From assembly GCA_020536535.1 (NCBI GenBank), contig JAHLWZ010000267.1:17153-81152 (forward strand): a stretch of DNA of 64,000 nucleotides, read 5' to 3'. Position numbers and translations under genes: made by a program. Of this stretch, positions 2,543 through 24,088 are shown in pieces; position 1 is the stretch's first letter; each line of letters opens with the position of its first letter. Below the pieces are notes generated by a model, which was not told where the DNA came from, ran no database searches, and saw only the letters and a program-made list of their open reading frames with translations. The stretch comes from Pelomyxa schiedti (taxonomy: Eukaryota; Protista; Evosea).

Positions 2543-4461
2543 ATGCACCACGATTACAGCGTAACCACTGCAACAGGGGAACCTCAGCAACAACAACGAG
2601 GGAGTCAAACCCCACAAGAACAAGAACAACCACAACAGCAAGAACCCACCTCTGCCCCACCTTGCAATGGGTGCTCCACGGTATCATCCATCGCAGAACT
2701 GGCCACTGACTGCCTGGGTGCGTGGGCTGAGGACGGCGACACAAAAGGGGCGTACCTCCTGTCACTCCGCCTCGTTCTTGGTTGTTGCCATTGCTGCGCC
2801 GGCGGTACTGAGCAGCAAAAGCAGAGTGCTCTGCTGGAGCACCAGCGGGAGGTGTACCGCCAGCACGTGCAGTTCGAAATGGAAGGGAGCGACGACCGGT
2901 TGTACACCGTGGCGGCGGCGGCAGCTGACTCTACGCCACAATCGTCCGCTCTTGGGCACATGGTGTGGTACTGGCTCTTGGTGTGTGAGCCCAGGCTGCT
3001 GGAGGCCCTGTGGCCGATCGAGGCGTCTGTTCCAGAAAGGGTTTGCCAGGGTGCCAAGAGCCATCCCTTGTCTGCACAACAATGGATGGTTGACTTCCTG
3101 GGGGGCCTTGCCGATGCCACCACGGCAATCGCTGCCGCGGAGAATGCCAAGCTATCACTGCCCACTGGTGGTGTGTAATCGCCATTTTTCATTCATCGAA
3201 GCGTTCAACTATTCTTGGAAACAAAAACCTCCAACTCACCACTATATTTAAATGAACTTGGTGTGATTCTCTTCCAGTGCACCCAACTACTGCAATCACT
3301 TGTCCAGAAGAAAGAGGTACAAAATCGAGGTTGTGCAGTTTGGCACACTTCTTGCTTGGAATTGCGCACTCACGGGAATACGGACCATGGCCATTTACCA
3401 ATGAACCCAAGGCCAAGGAACACATCAAGACTGCTGCCGACGGTGGTGACAAAATGGCACAATTCTGGTTGTGGAGCCAATATGGTGACGAATACTTGGA
3501 CTATGTTCCAAAGTCTGCCTCACAGGGATTCTGCCCTGCACTTCACGCCCTTGGGCTGATGCACCAAGAAGTTGATGCCCCAGAGGGTGTGCCTTTAAAC
3601 CGCACAGAGGGCCTCAGGTTGCTTCGAGTTGGGGCAGCGGAGAAAGGGGACGCATGGTGCCAGTTTGAGACGGCCAAAGTAGCAACTCAGAAGGAGGACG
3701 CACTGAGGTTGTTCAAGCTTGCCTCTGATCAAGGCCTCGCACTGGCACAGTACGGTTTGGCATGCTCACTTTTACAGCTGGATGACAACACAGGGAATAA
3801 CGAGCGGGATGCGCTCCGCCTGTTGAAGCTATCTGCTTGCCAGGGTGTCCCAAACTCACTGACGATGCTTGGAGTGTTTTTCCTTACGGGATTCAGAGTG
3901 GAACGGAACTACAGCACGGCAGTTGAGTACCTGTCATTGGCTTCCGAAACAGGTGACCCAACTGCGCAGTTGAACCTGGCACAGTGCTATTTGGATGGGA
4001 AAGGAGTCGAAACAGACGAGGCCCAAGCACTCAGACTGCTTCAGCAGGCCTCAGACAGCGGTTTGGCAGAGGCAGATGTTTCCATTGGGGTGATGTATCT
4101 GGAAGGCTCCACTGCCATCCCGCTGGACCTCACAAAGGCCTGCCACCATTTCCAGAGCGCCATTCAGAAGAACAGTGAGTGCTCTGAGGCTTCGTTTTTC
4201 CTTGGTGTGCTGATGCTGCGTGGTGTTGCACCAGGAACCAGGCAGGAGGGAATGGCACTTGTGCAGAAGTCGACAGAGTCCATGGCGCCAGCGACGTTTG
4301 TTGGGCTTGGTGAGGTGTATGAGTATGGAGTGGGAGGGATCACGAGGGATTTGAGGGAAGCATCGAGGTGGTTCAGGCTGGCTGCTGCCTCATCTGCACC
4401 AACTTCTTCCCATGTACAAAAGGCACTTGAAAAACTTGAGGAGTTGACAAGGCAGCCATGA
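2543..4461 (+). CDS. Sel1-like repeat (SLR) protein with Q-rich N-terminal extension
   Basis: ORFs 2543-3178 and 3277-4461 join in frame through a phase-1 intron 3171-3277 (GGTG|gtgtgt...ttccag|TG). Repeated Sel1 motifs: AQYGLACSLL, AQLNLAQCYLDGKGVETDEAQALRLLQQASDSG, GLGEVYEYGVGGITRDLREASRWFRLAA. Confidence 0.85.
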
Positions 4462-15839: not shown

Positions 15840-16908
15840 CTAGCATAGTTTACAAGAGAAGATACACACCACAGCGCCGTCGTCATCATCCAATACACCA
15901 GAAGGGAACACTTGCACCAGCATGGCCATTTCTCCGCGGCAAATGGGGCACAGTGGGGTGCTGCTATTCTTGATTGATGTGAGGCAAGTCCTGCACCCAC
16001 ACTGGTGACCACAGGGAACAACCAGGAAATCAGCATTCTCAGCCAGGCACACAACGCACTTTGGTGACACAGTAGCATTGGCCGGTGCCTCCTCAACAGG
16101 AGTACTCAATGCGGTACTCGTACTAGTATCAGGCCTCGGCTCCGGAGCATGGGAGAGCAGCGTAGTGAGGTAGGCCAGAACCTGGTCAACCGGCTTATCG
16201 GCATCAACTACATCTATCTTCCTGAAGCAAGGCACAACGAAGCCGAACTGCATGTGGTATTCGGTCAGCTTCCTGCGTGCAGCCTCAGGGTTAGCATCAT
16301 AGTCCCTCCTGACCAGCCTGGACTTGTCCAAGTCGTCGGGAGGCGGGTAGAACCTCGAATGGTAGATGTTCCCGTTGCTGGGATCGATCCTGCGACCCGT
16401 CAGTCGCTCGACGCACACGTCGTCCGGCACGTCCAGCACGACGCACCTCTCGACGTCGAGCCCGGCGCACAGCCTCACGGCCTGCTGCCGGGTCACGGGG
16501 AAGCCGTCGAGCAGGATCGCGGCGGGGGGGGGTCGCGGGGCCGAGCCCGGGCGCGGGCGGCAGCGGTCGGCGATGGCGTCGACGATGAGGAGGTCGGGCA
16601 CGGCGACGCCCTGCGACACCTTGGTGGTGTCGTCGTGGCCGGCGAACATGTCGGGGTATTTCTGCGAAACGTCGTACGCCAGCCTCGACGTGCTGACGTG
16701 TTGCATCCTGCCTAGTGTTTGTTGTGTTTGCTTTTGTTTTTGGTGTTTTGTTTGTTTGTTTGTTTGGTTGCTCGTTTCCCCCCTCAAGGGCATCGTTGTG
16801 AACAACATACCCGAGAGTAACTTGTAGTCTTTTGCATAGTGTGCCCTTGCCTGACCCTGGTGGGCCCAGTACCACTATCAACCTCGTCTGTGGTGTGGTC
16901 GCAGCCAT
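15840..16908 (-). CDS. Adenylate-kinase-like domain fused to C-terminal C3HC4 RING
   Basis: Exon 1 MAATTPQTRLIVVLGPPGSGKGTLCKRL (P-loop). Then GVAVPD, ILLDGFPVTRQQA, ERLTGRRIDPSNGNIYH (LID), and RING CVVCLAENADFLVVPCGHQCGCRTC...CPICR. 3' end could include another exon. Confidence 0.85.
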
Positions 16909-17019
16909 TTTTTCTTTTGTTTTTCCCTTTTTGATTCTCCAAGCCTCATCACCATCGCAGAAGACTGTTTTTCGCAGACTCTCGGTACGATTCCCAGCAA
17001 CAGACACCCCTCTTGAGCG

Positions 17020-18446
17020 ATGAATTCTTGCGGCAGAGACGATTTGGGGTTGAGTGTGCCGAGAGAGGAGGATGCATTGTTGGTGTTGGGAGACACTTTG
17101 TGTTGGTTGTTGCACGCTCTGCGGTGTCGCTGCTCCGGCGGCTGCCGCGCACTCGCCCCGGATCTGCCGCCCCTTCCTCCGTCCGTTTATGATCTCCTTC
17201 CGCCGAACGCGGACCCTGACGCGGCCAGCAGCAGCAGCAACAGCAACAGCAACGACGCGCTACGTCGCGAGATGCCGGCTGTTGTGCACCACGTTCTGTG
17301 CGTCCACGGTGTGACGCGTGAGGTCGCTTCTAGGCTGAAAATGTCTCCTGAGTGTGCCAAATTGAGACCACCAAGTTTGATGCGCGGCCATTTGATGCGT
17401 AGACAAACGCAATCAGAGTCACAATCACAATCACAATCACAATCTCAAGTTCAAGTGCAAATGCGAAATCCATATATACAAATAGAAGAAAAGACAGTTG
17501 ATACCAAATCAGGTGTTTCCCCACTACTTTTCTTGTTCGTGTGCCTTACCTGAGCTGATTTTCATTCTTTTGTAACCTAGTACTTTTGGAACCTTACAGC
17601 AGAAGATGGCTACTTCTGGTGGCTCAACTTATCAATATAATTGACCCAACGTTGCCACATCGACTTATGGAAGGTGGGTCTTTGTTATAGGATTTTATGC
17701 ATCTCAACCACTCATAGTTTCCGGTGGCTCAAGTTTAGTTGCCATCCAACACTCCCTCGTGATGCTAGGATCAAAATTGCCATCCAAAAACTCTTCAACA
17801 GTACGCATTCCCTTCTCTAGTTTCCCTTTGATATTTTTCTAGACCGAACACCTCACCTTTCTGATAGAGTTAGCTTCCTTTGCCCTATACTGTCTCAGTA
17901 GTCTCCACTCCCCACAGTCGTTACACCAAAGTTCCTTTGCACACACGGCCGTGCTAGATGCTGCGCTCGAATCCAGTTCGCTATTCTCAGTGTGTGGTCA
18001 GTGATCCATCCTCTCTTGTCTAACCTCCCTCGAAGACCGACTGCCAAATTCCCAAGACAAACAGACCCCCACCAACTCACATGAGTGACCAGTTTTCTCC
18101 TGTTGAATACAATCCGCTTCCCAGCCAACAACAGTACCACAGAACCATTTCCACCCTCATAAACACTGGGAGCACTTCATGCTACATACCAACGCTGAAA
18201 GAGAGTGCAAGGGCCATAGCCACGCAACAGGTTACTCAGCTGGGAGGCATAGAAGATGTGGCTCAGCTCATGGAGAAACACAACACCCTTGTCTGTGGAC
18301 TTGTAGACAAACTGGGATACCTTTCCAACCTGTGCAACCAATTGAGGTCCCAGCTCAGCATTCCCGTGGAGACTCCTCCTACCTCACAACTGTTTCAACA
18401 GCACCAACTTCTTGAAAGGCTTGCAGGCGGCAGAAATACTCTGTAG
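17020..18446 (+). CDS. Hypothetical multi-exon protein; weak resemblance to CH-like N-terminus of augmin subunit HAUS7/AUG7
   Basis: ORF 17020-17553 plus exons RRWLLLVAQLINIIDP and coiled-coil ORF 18081-18446 (LVDKLGYLSNLCNQLRSQL). Family assignment is inference only. Confidence 0.45.
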
Positions 18447-18661
18447 TGTTCCTCTGTAAGGCACCCAACCCCATATTCCAAAACCACACCTAACCTCCAT
18501 TCAGAGACAAAACGAAAACCCCTTGTTGTACAACAATAGAACCGAAAGCCACACAACTTTTCACCGGAGAAAGCTCCGCAAATATATTCCATGTTCTTTC
18601 AGAGAGGTTTTTTTTTCTCTGCTCTCTTCTAGACCTAAGCAAAAAGAAGGTTTTGGGGCTG

Positions 18662-18783
18662 TTCGCGACAATCACGTGTAAGAATCGCCTTAACCACTCG
18701 GCCACTGCGGCTTATGTAGTGTCGCCGCAGGTGGGATTCGAACCCACGGTTCCATAGGAAAATTGTTTTTTGAGATGTTTCGA
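18662..18783 (-). tRNA. Candidate circularly permuted tRNA-Ser(CGA): 3' half (18767/18783-18723), 11-nt spacer, 5' half (18711-18667/18662)
   Basis: Minus strand reads ACAAT-T-TTCC.TAT.GGAA-CC-GTGGG.TTCGAAT.CCCAC-CTGCGGC-G / ACACTACATAA / GCCGCAG-TG-GCCGAGTGGTTAAGGC-G-ATT[13 nt]GT-C... The acceptor stem is a perfect 7 bp (GCCGCAG/CTGCGGC), the discriminator is G, and there is a long variable arm. ATTGT/ACAAT form the anticodon stem. A T5 run follows at 18645-18641. Confidence 0.8.
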
Positions 18784-19114
18784 TGAAGTGATCATTCATC
18801 AGGGTGGCACTATTCTCTTGGAGGCCTCCATTTTGCAATGAACTTCACCAAGAGGGCACACCACAGCAACCCCGCAGAAAAAAACCACGGTGCTGGAGAG
18901 GAAAAAGGGAGAAACTTTTTGCTCGGTTAGGATTGTGGGACGGACTCAAAGTTTATCCTTGCAACAAATAGATTTCTGTAATACCCACACCTATGTATTC
19001 TTTATTTTATGGTGGCTAAAATAGCTGGAAAAGAGAAAGTGCAGCTGTGCTGGTGTCGTATGGCTGGAACCAGTCGTGCGGTCCCAATGTATCAGAGGCC
19101 TTCAGATAGTGCAT

Positions 19115-20564
19115 TTAGTGGAAGTTTGTGGGAACTAGATAGAGAGCACAAACCTCCCATAGATTTGAACTGGCTCGGATTCCAAATGTGCGAGTCACAG
19201 GCTTTGAACTACCAGCCTCAAGCCCCATTCTGATCATGGCTTGTTGGTAGTCTGTGTTGCACGAGAAAAGGGGAACATTCATAGCTTTGGCGCGGCACAG
19301 GGAGTGAGCAACAACGGCAGACGTAATGCGGTCCCATAATGCTGCCTTTTCCGTAGGATTCCGATCAGAAAGGAGCGGAAAGTCAATCTGAGGGCTCTCC
19401 AAGTATCTTCATTTGGATGAATGTGAGAACAGGTAGATAAGTAAAGAGAAGGGAAAAAGAAAGAAATTTAGAATACAGCGCAAGAGGTCCATTTACATCC
19501 CCCAAGTGCAATAACCTCATGTAGCATCTCCCAGCGGGATTGTGATGCCACTCTGGAATTTGAATGACAAGTACCTTATTTTTGGGATTTGTGAACTGTG
19601 CCAAGGCACACACAGGACTAAAGTCGAATCCATGACTAGGGCCACCAATTTTTGTAGCCCAAAGAAGCTCAGGGCCCTCCTCCTCCCAAGAAATCACTCC
19701 CTGGCCGAGTGAAGACCCATGATCCACTTTCAAGGAGGAAATCCAAGACTCAGTAAGCGGCCCAAGCGGAGCCAATTGTCTACGAGCGTGGCATAGAGGA
19801 GGCACAGCAACCTCCGCCGGGCCAGGCTTGGGGTAAATCCCACCATTCATCCTCCATTCCGCGAAGGCGCCGGCCAGAATTGCCCTCACACAGCAAAGGG
19901 CCGCCTCCGCGTTCCTCCTCACAACATCGGCCTTTCCCATAACTCTGCCAGAGCACGACGAATCGGATTCGGGTTCGGCGCGGCCGGTACCAGGGAATTC
20001 CCAGAAGCTAGGCAGGCCAAGGGCGTCGGGCCCTGAGCGGCTGCATTCCACAAGGCACCTGAGTGGGTGAATGACCTCACAGCGAGTGATGGAGTCCTCA
20101 AAGGCATCAAGGGGCACGGGGCCGTCCGCTGCCCTCCAGGATTCGTAAGTCCCATAATCCACTCCCACCTCGGCCGCGAGCAGCCTCGGCAGCACCGACG
20201 ACCTCACGAACGCAACCGCGCGCTCGACCTCGGCGGCGTCCCCGCTCGCCGACGCGCGGCGGATCTCGTCGGCTGCCGCGGCCGCCGACGCGGAGACGTT
20301 CGCTCGGCTGCGCACGTGCCTCTTGGTCGCGTTTTCGTTGCGCAGCATCGCGTGGTCGCCCCGCCGGTAGTCGAGGCGCGACGTCGGCGAGTCCCAGTGC
20401 GCGTACCACGCGCACGTCCGCCGCTCGGCCCCGACGTCGGTCGCCGTGTCGGCGCCGCTGTCGCACTGCCGCGCGAGGCTGCGCATCACCTCGGCGGCCC
20501 TGCCCGCGGACACCAACTTGGTGCCCTCCAGCACCGCCACCAACGGCGACACAGCTTCGTCCAT
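19115..20564 (-). CDS. Hypothetical protein with GC-rich N-terminal exon
   Basis: 415-aa ORF with AAAAAATG start at 20564 (MDEAVSPLV). An intron near 19420-19470 links to ORF 19115-19402. No recognised domain. Confidence 0.65.
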
Positions 20565-20697
20565 TTTTTGGTGTAGCAAGTTCGACAAAAAGCCAAGAAA
20601 AAAGATATCTCTCCAAAAAAAAATTGGCATTTTGCTTGTTTGGGGGTTATAGAGTACAGAGGAGGGAGTACTGGTTCTGGTGGGTGTCAGTGCTTCC

Positions 20698-24088
<3,391 letters not shown>

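Follow-up and report, generated by a model that had tools for sequence, protein, structure and literature searches.

Published permuted tRNA genes, as gathered by a full-text literature search, come from the red alga Cyanidioschyzon, the green algae Ostreococcus and Micromonas, chlorarachniophyte nucleomorphs and the archaeon Thermofilum only, with none from Amoebozoa. Wherever it has been studied, the maturation of permuted tRNAs is tied to the bulge-helix-bulge (BHB) motif, which is read by the tRNA splicing endonuclease. The 34 permuted tRNA genes known include 15 for tRNA-Ser, 14 of which are of type II with the junction at 37/38, the exception being the atypical Ser(CGA) gene of O. tauri, whose junction lies at 15/16 (PMC3978253, Table 1). 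In permuted genes the intervening sequence spans 1-74 nt and T-stretches 3' of the 5' half are the rule; in the accepted model, they arose when a gene with an intron was duplicated in tandem and the outer parts were then lost (PMC3978253). Here we describe a permuted tRNA-Ser(CGA) gene from Pelomyxa schiedti, whose genome paper does not contain the word tRNA (PMC8887013).

Several described systems share features with this gene. Like it, the tRNA-Ser(UGA) gene of Ostreococcus lucimarinus (Maruyama et al., 2010; PMC3978253, Table 1) is a nuclear class II gene that carries its 3' half first, with an intervening sequence of 13 nt compared with 11 nt in P. schiedti. The algal gene combines a 37/38 junction with a 'no H' intron at 27/28 in the 5' strand of the anticodon stem, and 27/28 is also one of the registers of the insert in P. 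schiedti; this intron measures 56 nt in the green alga, whereas the insert of the amoebozoan measures 13 nt (PMC3978253). The junctions of green-algal permuted pre-tRNAs are hBH motifs (PMC3978253), and none of these can be drawn in the P. schiedti tRNA-Ser. Permutation together with ectopic introns, as in P. schiedti, is also found in Cyanidioschyzon merolae (Soma, 2007, 2013; PMC3728597), a red alga rather than a heterotrophic amoebozoan. Every junction and every intron of C. merolae has a BHB of its own (PMC3728597), while the P. schiedti tRNA-Ser has none. The processing expected by analogy with C. merolae is that the termini are ligated and the acceptor stem is opened later (PMC3728597). 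In the wording of two reviews, the nucleomorph of Guillardia theta (Kawach, 2005, via PMC3978253 and PMC3728597) has short non-canonical tRNA introns that are mostly incapable of forming a BHB, which resembles P. schiedti; as described there, its tRNA genes differ from the present one in being nucleomorph-encoded and unpermuted. Finally, the tRNA-Ser(CAG) of Candida albicans has G in place of U33, as is encoded in the P. schiedti gene. In C. albicans, G33 is linked to the reassignment of CUG and opposes leucylation (PMC1991585), whereas the P. schiedti anticodon is CGA and carries no hint of reassignment.

The gene was analyzed within a window of 64,000 nucleotides (64 kb), the whole stretch of DNA under study, taken from the 81,152-nt contig JAHLWZ010000267.1 (GCA_020536535.1). 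One P. schiedti protein matches a Sel1 gene of the window with 100% identity, and an open reading frame at 19383-20630 (minus strand) shows 97% identity to the hypothetical protein Pelo_3454 of P. schiedti. The neighbouring genes contain many GT..AG introns of 44-70 nt, as seen in single-cell RNA contigs, in a genome with 7.4 introns per gene (PMC8887013). These intron-rich neighbours and the protein matches indicate that the DNA of the locus is nuclear P. schiedti DNA, and thus that of an anaerobic archamoeba (Amoebozoa). Two annotated genes converge on the tRNA unit, which occupies a 569-bp spacer separating the stop codon of the Pelo_3454 gene from that of its neighbour (Table 1). Judged by its sequence, the T7 run upstream of the unit would halt RNA polymerase III coming from that side. 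On the plus strand the same run reads as A7 and could permit internal priming by oligo-dT.

Table 1. Features of the permuted tRNA-Ser(CGA) locus of P. schiedti, in window positions and, for the tRNA unit, in 5' to 3' order on the minus strand.
Feature	Position	Strand	Reading and basis
T7 run	18884-18878	minus	upstream of the tRNA unit; sequence
Leader	18876-18768	minus	discarded if the junction is at 37/38; fold and RNA contigs 18723-18871
T-CGA-A in leader	18783-18779	minus	U33-A37 if the junction is at 32/33; relic of an upstream anticodon-loop copy, or chance, if it is at 37/38
ACATCTCAAAA	18778-18768	minus	11 nt; 37/38 intron (registers 36/37 to 38/39) if the junction is at 32/33
3' half	18767-18723	minus	A38, ACAAT (18766-62), variable arm, T arm, acceptor 3' strand, G73
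Variable arm	18761-18748	minus	14 nt, 4-bp stem
T arm GTGGG-TTCGAAT-CCCAC	18747-18731	minus	sequence
Acceptor 3' strand CTGCGGC	18730-18724	minus	sequence
Discriminator G73	18723	minus	followed by ACA; CCA not encoded
Linker ACACTACATAA between G73 and G1	18722-18712	minus	11 nt
5' half, first part	18711-18683	minus	acceptor 5' strand, U8, D arm, G26, A27-U29
Acceptor 5' strand GCCGCAG	18711-18705	minus	sequence
G26	18686	minus	followed by ATT (18685-83)
Insert CTTACACGTGATT	18682-18670	minus	13 nt, drawn at register 29/30
5' half, second part	18669-18662	minus	G30, U31, C32 (18667), G33 (18666), C34-G35-A36 (18665-63), A37 (18662)
Trailer CAGCCCCAAAACCTTC	18661-18646	minus	16 nt
T5 run	18645-18641	minus	candidate RNA polymerase III terminator, 16 nt past A37
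Flanking annotated gene	~17020-18446	plus	convergent neighbour
Flanking annotated gene	~19016-20564	minus	convergent neighbour

On the minus strand, a T arm and an acceptor 3' strand are followed after 11 nt by a complementary acceptor 5' strand and a D arm, which is the order of a circularly permuted gene. All seven acceptor pairs (7/7) form across the linker, which RNase P and tRNase Z would excise. The 5' half contains the A-box-like sequence TGGCCGAGTGG, and its D arm is of the Ser type (GCCGAGTGGTTAAGGC); together with a variable arm of 14 nt and G73, this identifies a class II tRNA-Ser. The unit ends in a T-stretch terminator, and the discriminator is followed by ACA in place of an encoded CCA. 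When the halves were joined in silico, the products with G33 (junction at 37/38) and with U33 (junction at 32/33) were both called tRNA-Ser(cga) by ARAGORN, with 7/7 acceptor pairs, canonical T and D arms and a class II variable arm. With the 13 nt of the insert taken out beforehand, all eukaryotic consensus nucleotides are there save U33 in the product of the 37/38 junction. Such a cloverleaf cannot be due to chance. The sequence-only reading had proposed a permuted tRNA gene in which the anticodon CGA occurs twice, as C-G-CGA-A in the 5' half and as T-CGA-A in the leader. Its coordinates and layout are correct base for base, both copies of CGA are present, and joining the halves according to either of its two models gives tRNA-Ser(CGA).

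In the raw 64-kb window no tRNA was detected by ARAGORN or Rfam. At a loose threshold, the tRNA model of Rfam matched the T arm alone, and the best Rfam match over the succession of T arm, acceptor strand, linker, acceptor strand and D arm was YrlA, at a sub-threshold 17.2 bits (E = 0.9). An ARAGORN call of a tRNA-Arg with a 2012-nt intron at 15976-18082 was rejected as a false positive. A custom scanner for a T arm, an acceptor 3' strand, a short linker and a complementary 5' strand found a single locus in the window, the tRNA-Ser unit. A further ~75 kb of the P. schiedti assembly, reached via Sel1 paralogues, contained no tRNA gene detectable by ARAGORN with introns allowed or by the permuted-gene scanner, giving a density of one tRNA gene in ~139 kb for the window and the extra DNA together. 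A search of metagenomes for the permuted order (T arm, a gap of 18-48 nt, Ser-type D arm) revealed no orthologous locus by which the insert might be dated, its 5 pattern matches all being ordinary adjacent pairs of tRNA genes.

Both anomalies of the gene lie in its anticodon arm. The stem ATTGT:ACAAT exists solely with 13 nt removed or looped out, in keeping with the proposal of a 13-nt insert that is flanked by a GATT repeat and has to be removed for the stem to form; the arm calls for either an unorthodox excision or the toleration of a 13-nt loop. The two GATT copies (18686-83 and 18673-70) allow the insert to slide through five registers, 25/26 to 29/30. It includes the palindrome CACGTG, and it sits in the stem rather than at the 37/38 position of tRNA introns. 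It is not a tandem duplication, because the repeated part comprises 4 nt only. A junction of the tRNA-Ser gene at 29/30 was also considered and rejected, as G30-U31-C32 are present only downstream of the insert. Before any splicing, the second copy of GATT gives the RNA a contiguous stem of 6 bp, GAUUGU:ACAAUU (h = 6), so that the body and the anticodon stem can form prior to any removal.

The second anomaly is the G at nucleotide 33 of the contiguous anticodon loop, which had been read from the sequence and is indeed encoded at 18666. U33 is one of the general consensus elements of eukaryotic tRNAs (PMC3978253); it is conserved, and G33 has been called unique to the tRNA-Ser(CAG) of Candida, where its decoding efficiency is below that of U33 (PMC1991585). 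The two joined products differ in their predicted folds. With U33, the cloverleaf is the MFE structure and the pair probabilities of the anticodon stem are 0.52-0.56. With G33, the MFE structure is not the cloverleaf, a GCGA/UCGC hairpin being favoured by 1.4 kcal/mol; the anticodon-stem pair probabilities drop to 0.11-0.12, and G33 and C34 pair with C25 and G24 in alternative hairpins. In the predicted fold of the precursor, the G at 18666 stabilizes hairpins near the insert that are specific to the precursor (GCGAU:GUCGC and CGUGA:UCGCG). This fits a base that is free of the constraints on a mature tRNA, as in a gene joined at 32/33 or in a dead gene, equally with a base selected for the fold of the precursor.

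The splicing signals were assessed by enumerating all position pairs in a precursor of 250 nt and then scoring each required pair of cuts. In the BHB geometry that was applied, helix H has a half of 4 nt on each strand, after which comes a bulge of 3 nt with the cut behind its second base; the exons make up helix h, and the excised part makes up helix h'. None of the BHB, hBH and BHL motifs fits any required cut in this precursor, be it at the junctions, at the insert or at the additional intron that a 32/33 junction entails. For the insert, the scores were H 0/4, h = 5 and h' = 1 at 25/26; H 1/4, h = 0 and h' = 1 at 26/27; H 2/4, h = 2 and h' = 0 at 27/28; H 3/4, h = 0 and h' = 0 at 28/29; and H 2/4, h = 1 and h' = 0 at 29/30. 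The background chance of H >= 3 is 0.16, and the lone value of 3/4 at 28/29 is therefore meaningless. A junction near the anticodon scored H 2/4, h = 2 and h' = 0 at 35/36; H 2/4, h = 0 and h' = 0 at 36/37; and H 1/4, h = 6 and h' = 0 at 37/38. At most, a 'no H' structure with an insertion of ~95 nt on one strand can be drawn at the junction. Motifs with H = 4 do occur, 342 of them in 250 nt as expected by chance, and they cut elsewhere and give no usable product. Two BHBs built by hand, via the palindrome CACGTG of the insert and via a helix of ATGATCAC and GTGATTGT in the leader, were rejected because their products are unproductive. The anticodon-intron pair is likewise absent, C32 facing A at -3 in every 37/38 register.

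Pairing between the ends of the precursor was also evaluated. The trailer sequence CAGCCCC can pair with GGGGTTG of the leader (18873-67), and the extended duplex of GGGGUUG-C-UGUGG (18873-61) with UCGCG-AA-CAGCCCC reaches -16.4 kcal/mol. This value is at chance level, being reached by 24% of shuffled leaders and by 23% of random pieces of the window. The MFE fold of the leader itself includes two hairpins: one, at ~18864-18804, is long and imperfect, and the other, at 18801-18781, has a 7-nt loop and a 7-bp stem that contains the T, C and G of the T-CGA-A motif. The sequence-only reading had reported that a clean BHB could not be built by hand, and this holds after full enumeration, also for BHL. 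Its suggestion of atypical rules for the endonuclease substrate is a reasonable inference, but a lesioned gene accounts equally for what is observed. With no cut lying within a BHB, an enzyme that processes this RNA, if it is processed, follows rules other than those of the BHB.

RNA evidence was taken from the assembled contigs of three oligo-dT-primed single-cell Smart-seq2 libraries (PMC8887013), of which 5,501 letters were examined. In one of the three, library X3, a 128-nt contig spanning 18723-18844 has a depth of 47, compared with 3-14 for the neighbouring mRNAs, and 18815-18871 is represented by a 57-nt fragment that lies between Nextera ends. Silent stretches nearby argue against carry-over of DNA. 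The stretch 18576-18722, including the position of G33, has zero coverage in the RNA contigs. The 128-nt contig ends exactly at G73 (18723), followed by 6 letters unmatched to the genome, for which CCA, an A tail and a template-switch oligo are candidates, an end that soft-clipping near a mismatch could move by a few bases. It retains the leader and the 11 nt preceding A38, and thus represents an unprocessed leader with the 3' half. If it derives from the minus strand, the precursor was cut at the tRNase Z site ahead of the removal of the leader; such an order, with the tRNase Z cut first, would be unlike that in C. merolae or would mark a dead-end product. The contigs are strandless, and their coverage stops (upper limit 18871) 7 nt short of the plus-strand A7 run; it is possible that the RNA at the locus is an antisense transcript. 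No mature, circular or joined forms were seen in the assembled oligo-dT-primed contigs.

The sequence-only reading had left two architectures side by side, a junction at 37/38 with G33 and a junction at 32/33 with U33 and an additional intron. The evidence leans towards the first of these. A 37/38 junction needs fewer cuts, and in the predicted fold both of its cut sites lie in unpaired A-A/N (the slash marking the cut) adjoining a helix; at the 3' cut, h amounts to 6 bp. It is also the junction of the known type II tRNA-Ser genes. A further hint comes from comparing the leader with the 5' half and trailer. With position 33 as the anchor of the alignment, the segment 18783-68 (TCGAA and the 11 nt that follow) matches the segment 18666-51 (GCGAA and 11 nt) at 12 of 16 positions with a single gap, the 11-nt sequence ACATCTCAAAA being similar to CAGCCCCAAAA of the trailer. 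A likeness of this degree is reached in 1.8% of composition-preserving shuffles (p ~0.02), for a length that was chosen after viewing the data. General local alignment gave nothing significant, and no similarity between the leader and the 5' half was found upstream of position 33. The two segments may be copies left by a duplication, for which their likeness is only suggestive, although it agrees with the prediction of the accepted model of origin. On the duplication reading, the splice sites inherited would be those of the 37/38 junction, and the TCGAA of the leader would be a discarded relic that keeps the ancestral U33; ACATCTCAAAA, then the 3' end of the leader, is probably a former canonical intron.

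The explanation that we tentatively prefer, and which we rate only slightly below an even chance, is a type II gene with a 37/38 junction and a single intervening sequence of 13 nt in the anticodon stem, whose transcript is processed to a product with G33. Transcription would begin shortly past the T7 run and stop at the T5 run. Once the body has folded, its acceptor stem closed off by the linker of 11 nt, cleavage behind A37 would release the trailer and cleavage ahead of A38 the leader, and the ends so produced would be ligated. The 13 nt would be removed, most simply at 28/29 or 29/30, and the acceptor stem would be opened by RNase P and tRNase Z, leaving a mature product that bears the encoded G33. 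The TCGAA of the leader and the 11 nt after it would date from a tandem duplication in which the ancestral gene carried a canonical intron of 11 nt; they would be a leftover and not a second exon. Whether the locus yields a working tRNA at all is, in our judgement, about evenly balanced.

Many of the same observations can be read as signs of a gene in decay, which we hold to be rather unlikely. A formerly working type II permuted tRNA-Ser(CGA) gene would have been hit by a U33-to-G change and by a 13-nt insertion with 4-nt microhomology, and would still be transcribed and processed at its ends without giving a working tRNA. This would account for a G at a conserved U position, for the misfolding of the G33 product in silico and for the lack of a fitting splicing motif at every cut; the GATT microhomology at the borders of the insert is a signature of slippage or end joining, and the sole RNA seen, an unprocessed leader with the 3' half that is possibly tailed, is as would be seen for a dead-end precursor. 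Against decay, the other ~80 positions are flawless, including all stems, U8, G18G19, T54-C56 and G73, and the terminator is intact. Moreover, G33 and the insert are confined to eight adjacent positions and the rest of the gene is perfect, which is not the pattern of random decay, yet is no proof of function. The loss of U33 would be avoided altogether if the 5' half ended at C32 and the 3' half started at T33 (18783), with an 11-nt intron at about 37/38; together with the insert, this makes three excisions and gives the loop CU-CGA-AA. Such a gene, which we consider distinctly unlikely, would restore U33 and a product whose MFE structure is the cloverleaf, would make use of an intact TCGAA placed 11 nt ahead of A38, which shuffling produces so near the end of the leader in 4% of cases, and would explain why the G at 18666 boosts hairpins of the precursor only, as if exempt from the constraints on a mature tRNA. 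The TCGAA could be due to chance, since 11% of shuffles contain it somewhere in the leader and 4% contain it within the final 40 nt. The 32/33 junction further demands six cuts without a motif (H 1/4, h = 2 and h' = 0 at 32/33; H 0-2/4, h = 0-2 and h' = 0-1 for the three registers of the intron), with both junction cuts inside predicted helices and T33-C34-G35 buried in the 18801-18781 hairpin. None of the 34 permuted genes tabulated in PMC3978253 (Table 1) has a 32/33 junction, CGAA exactly in register after C32 in the trailer would be a 1/256 coincidence, and a leader and trailer that stem from a duplication would have inherited the splice sites of the 37/38 junction.

Two further possibilities do away with some or all of the splicing. 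The insert could be retained, with the second GATT forming the anticodon stem and a mature tRNA carrying an extra 13-nt loop between C25 and G26. The contiguous GAUUGU:ACAAUU stem of the unspliced RNA and the want of a splicing motif for the insert speak for this; the MFE structure of the insert-bearing RNA, which is without the anticodon stem, and the failure of ARAGORN to return a sensible call speak against it. A 13-nt loop at the hinge between the D and anticodon arms is not known among cytosolic elongator tRNAs. We consider retention very unlikely. We give hardly any credence to the idea that the locus encodes a tRNA-like domain of another small RNA, for instance a Y-RNA-like molecule with paired ends in which the T arm, the closed acceptor and the D arm mimic a tRNA. 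It draws on YrlA as the best Rfam match and on the pairing of the 5' end of the leader with the trailer in the MFE fold, but the score of that match lies far under the gathering score of 69 bits and the pairing of the ends is at chance level. The locus also retains a full Ser-type variable arm and both strands of the anticodon stem, with CGA in register.

Compared with its closest known counterpart, the tRNA-Ser(UGA) gene of O. lucimarinus, what is new in the P. schiedti gene is the amoebozoan host, the absence of a BHB and the G at position 33. A permuted tRNA-Ser that lacks a BHB and encodes G33 points either to a new kind of tRNA processing or to a decaying gene. In the latter case the locus would still record its origin as a permuted gene, with the duplicated copies of anticodon loop and intron remaining visible. 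It is conceivable, though we regard it as doubtful, that P. schiedti matures permuted and interrupted pre-tRNAs without a BHB and with a preference for the 5' strand of the anticodon stem (28/29 to 29/30), giving a working tRNA-Ser either via G33 or via a 32/33 junction and two introns. If functional, the gene would add a second natural case of a tRNA with G33, would suggest new substrate rules for a eukaryotic endonuclease or some other enzyme, and would mean that permuted tRNA genes are no longer tied to photosynthetic lineages.

RNA covering the leader and the 3' half of the permuted tRNA-Ser(CGA) gene was found in one of three single-cell libraries. An assembled contig from library X3, which carries no strand information, lies within 18723-18871 at a depth of 47, and one of its ends coincides exactly with the discriminator position of the tRNA. 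Past this position, the contig continues for six further letters that do not match the genome, while at least 88 nt of the leader are retained. No such contig over 18723-18871 was found in libraries X1 or X2.

Within the leader, a predicted hairpin was identified in which the T-C-G of the second TCGAA (18783-18779) is buried. Its dimensions match those of an anticodon arm; by a rough estimate, chance alone would yield about one hairpin with a 7-bp stem and a 7-nt loop in a sequence as long as this leader.

Coordinates of the leader hairpin and the Sel1-repeat gene in the window
Feature	Position	Strand	Description
Leader hairpin	18781-18801	minus	7-bp stem and 7-nt loop, UGAUGAA-UGAUCAC-UUCAUCG; predicted fold
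Sel1 gene	about 2879-4461		

The genes around 16000-21500 of the window are dense in GT..AG introns of 44-70 nt, and RNA contigs confirm 11 of these introns. Three base differences from the genome were observed at 16080-16123 in the X2 and X3 contigs, and a 3-nt insertion (TAG) at 16123 in those of all three libraries (X1-X3); the plus-strand gene at 16080-16123 probably varies between alleles or between cells. An MCM5-type helicase gene (L012 477-3878) is located upstream of the neighbouring gene Pelo_3454.

The Sel1-repeat protein family of P. schiedti comprises at least seven members among the matches listed, and three of its genes adjoin one another on contig JAHLWZ010001032.1 (L007 10001-15431). 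Outside Pelomyxa, the closest matches among those listed are bacterial.

Across ∼139 kb from P. schiedti (the window and stretches L006-L012), conventional tRNA genes were not detected by ARAGORN, even when introns were allowed. Its one call in the window with introns allowed, 'tRNA-Arg(tct)' at 15976-18082, was rejected as a false positive: the proposed intron is 2012 nt long and the call spans protein-coding exons. The permuted gene is the sole tRNA gene seen in these sequences. If the same is true genome-wide, most tRNA genes of P. schiedti would escape standard annotation.
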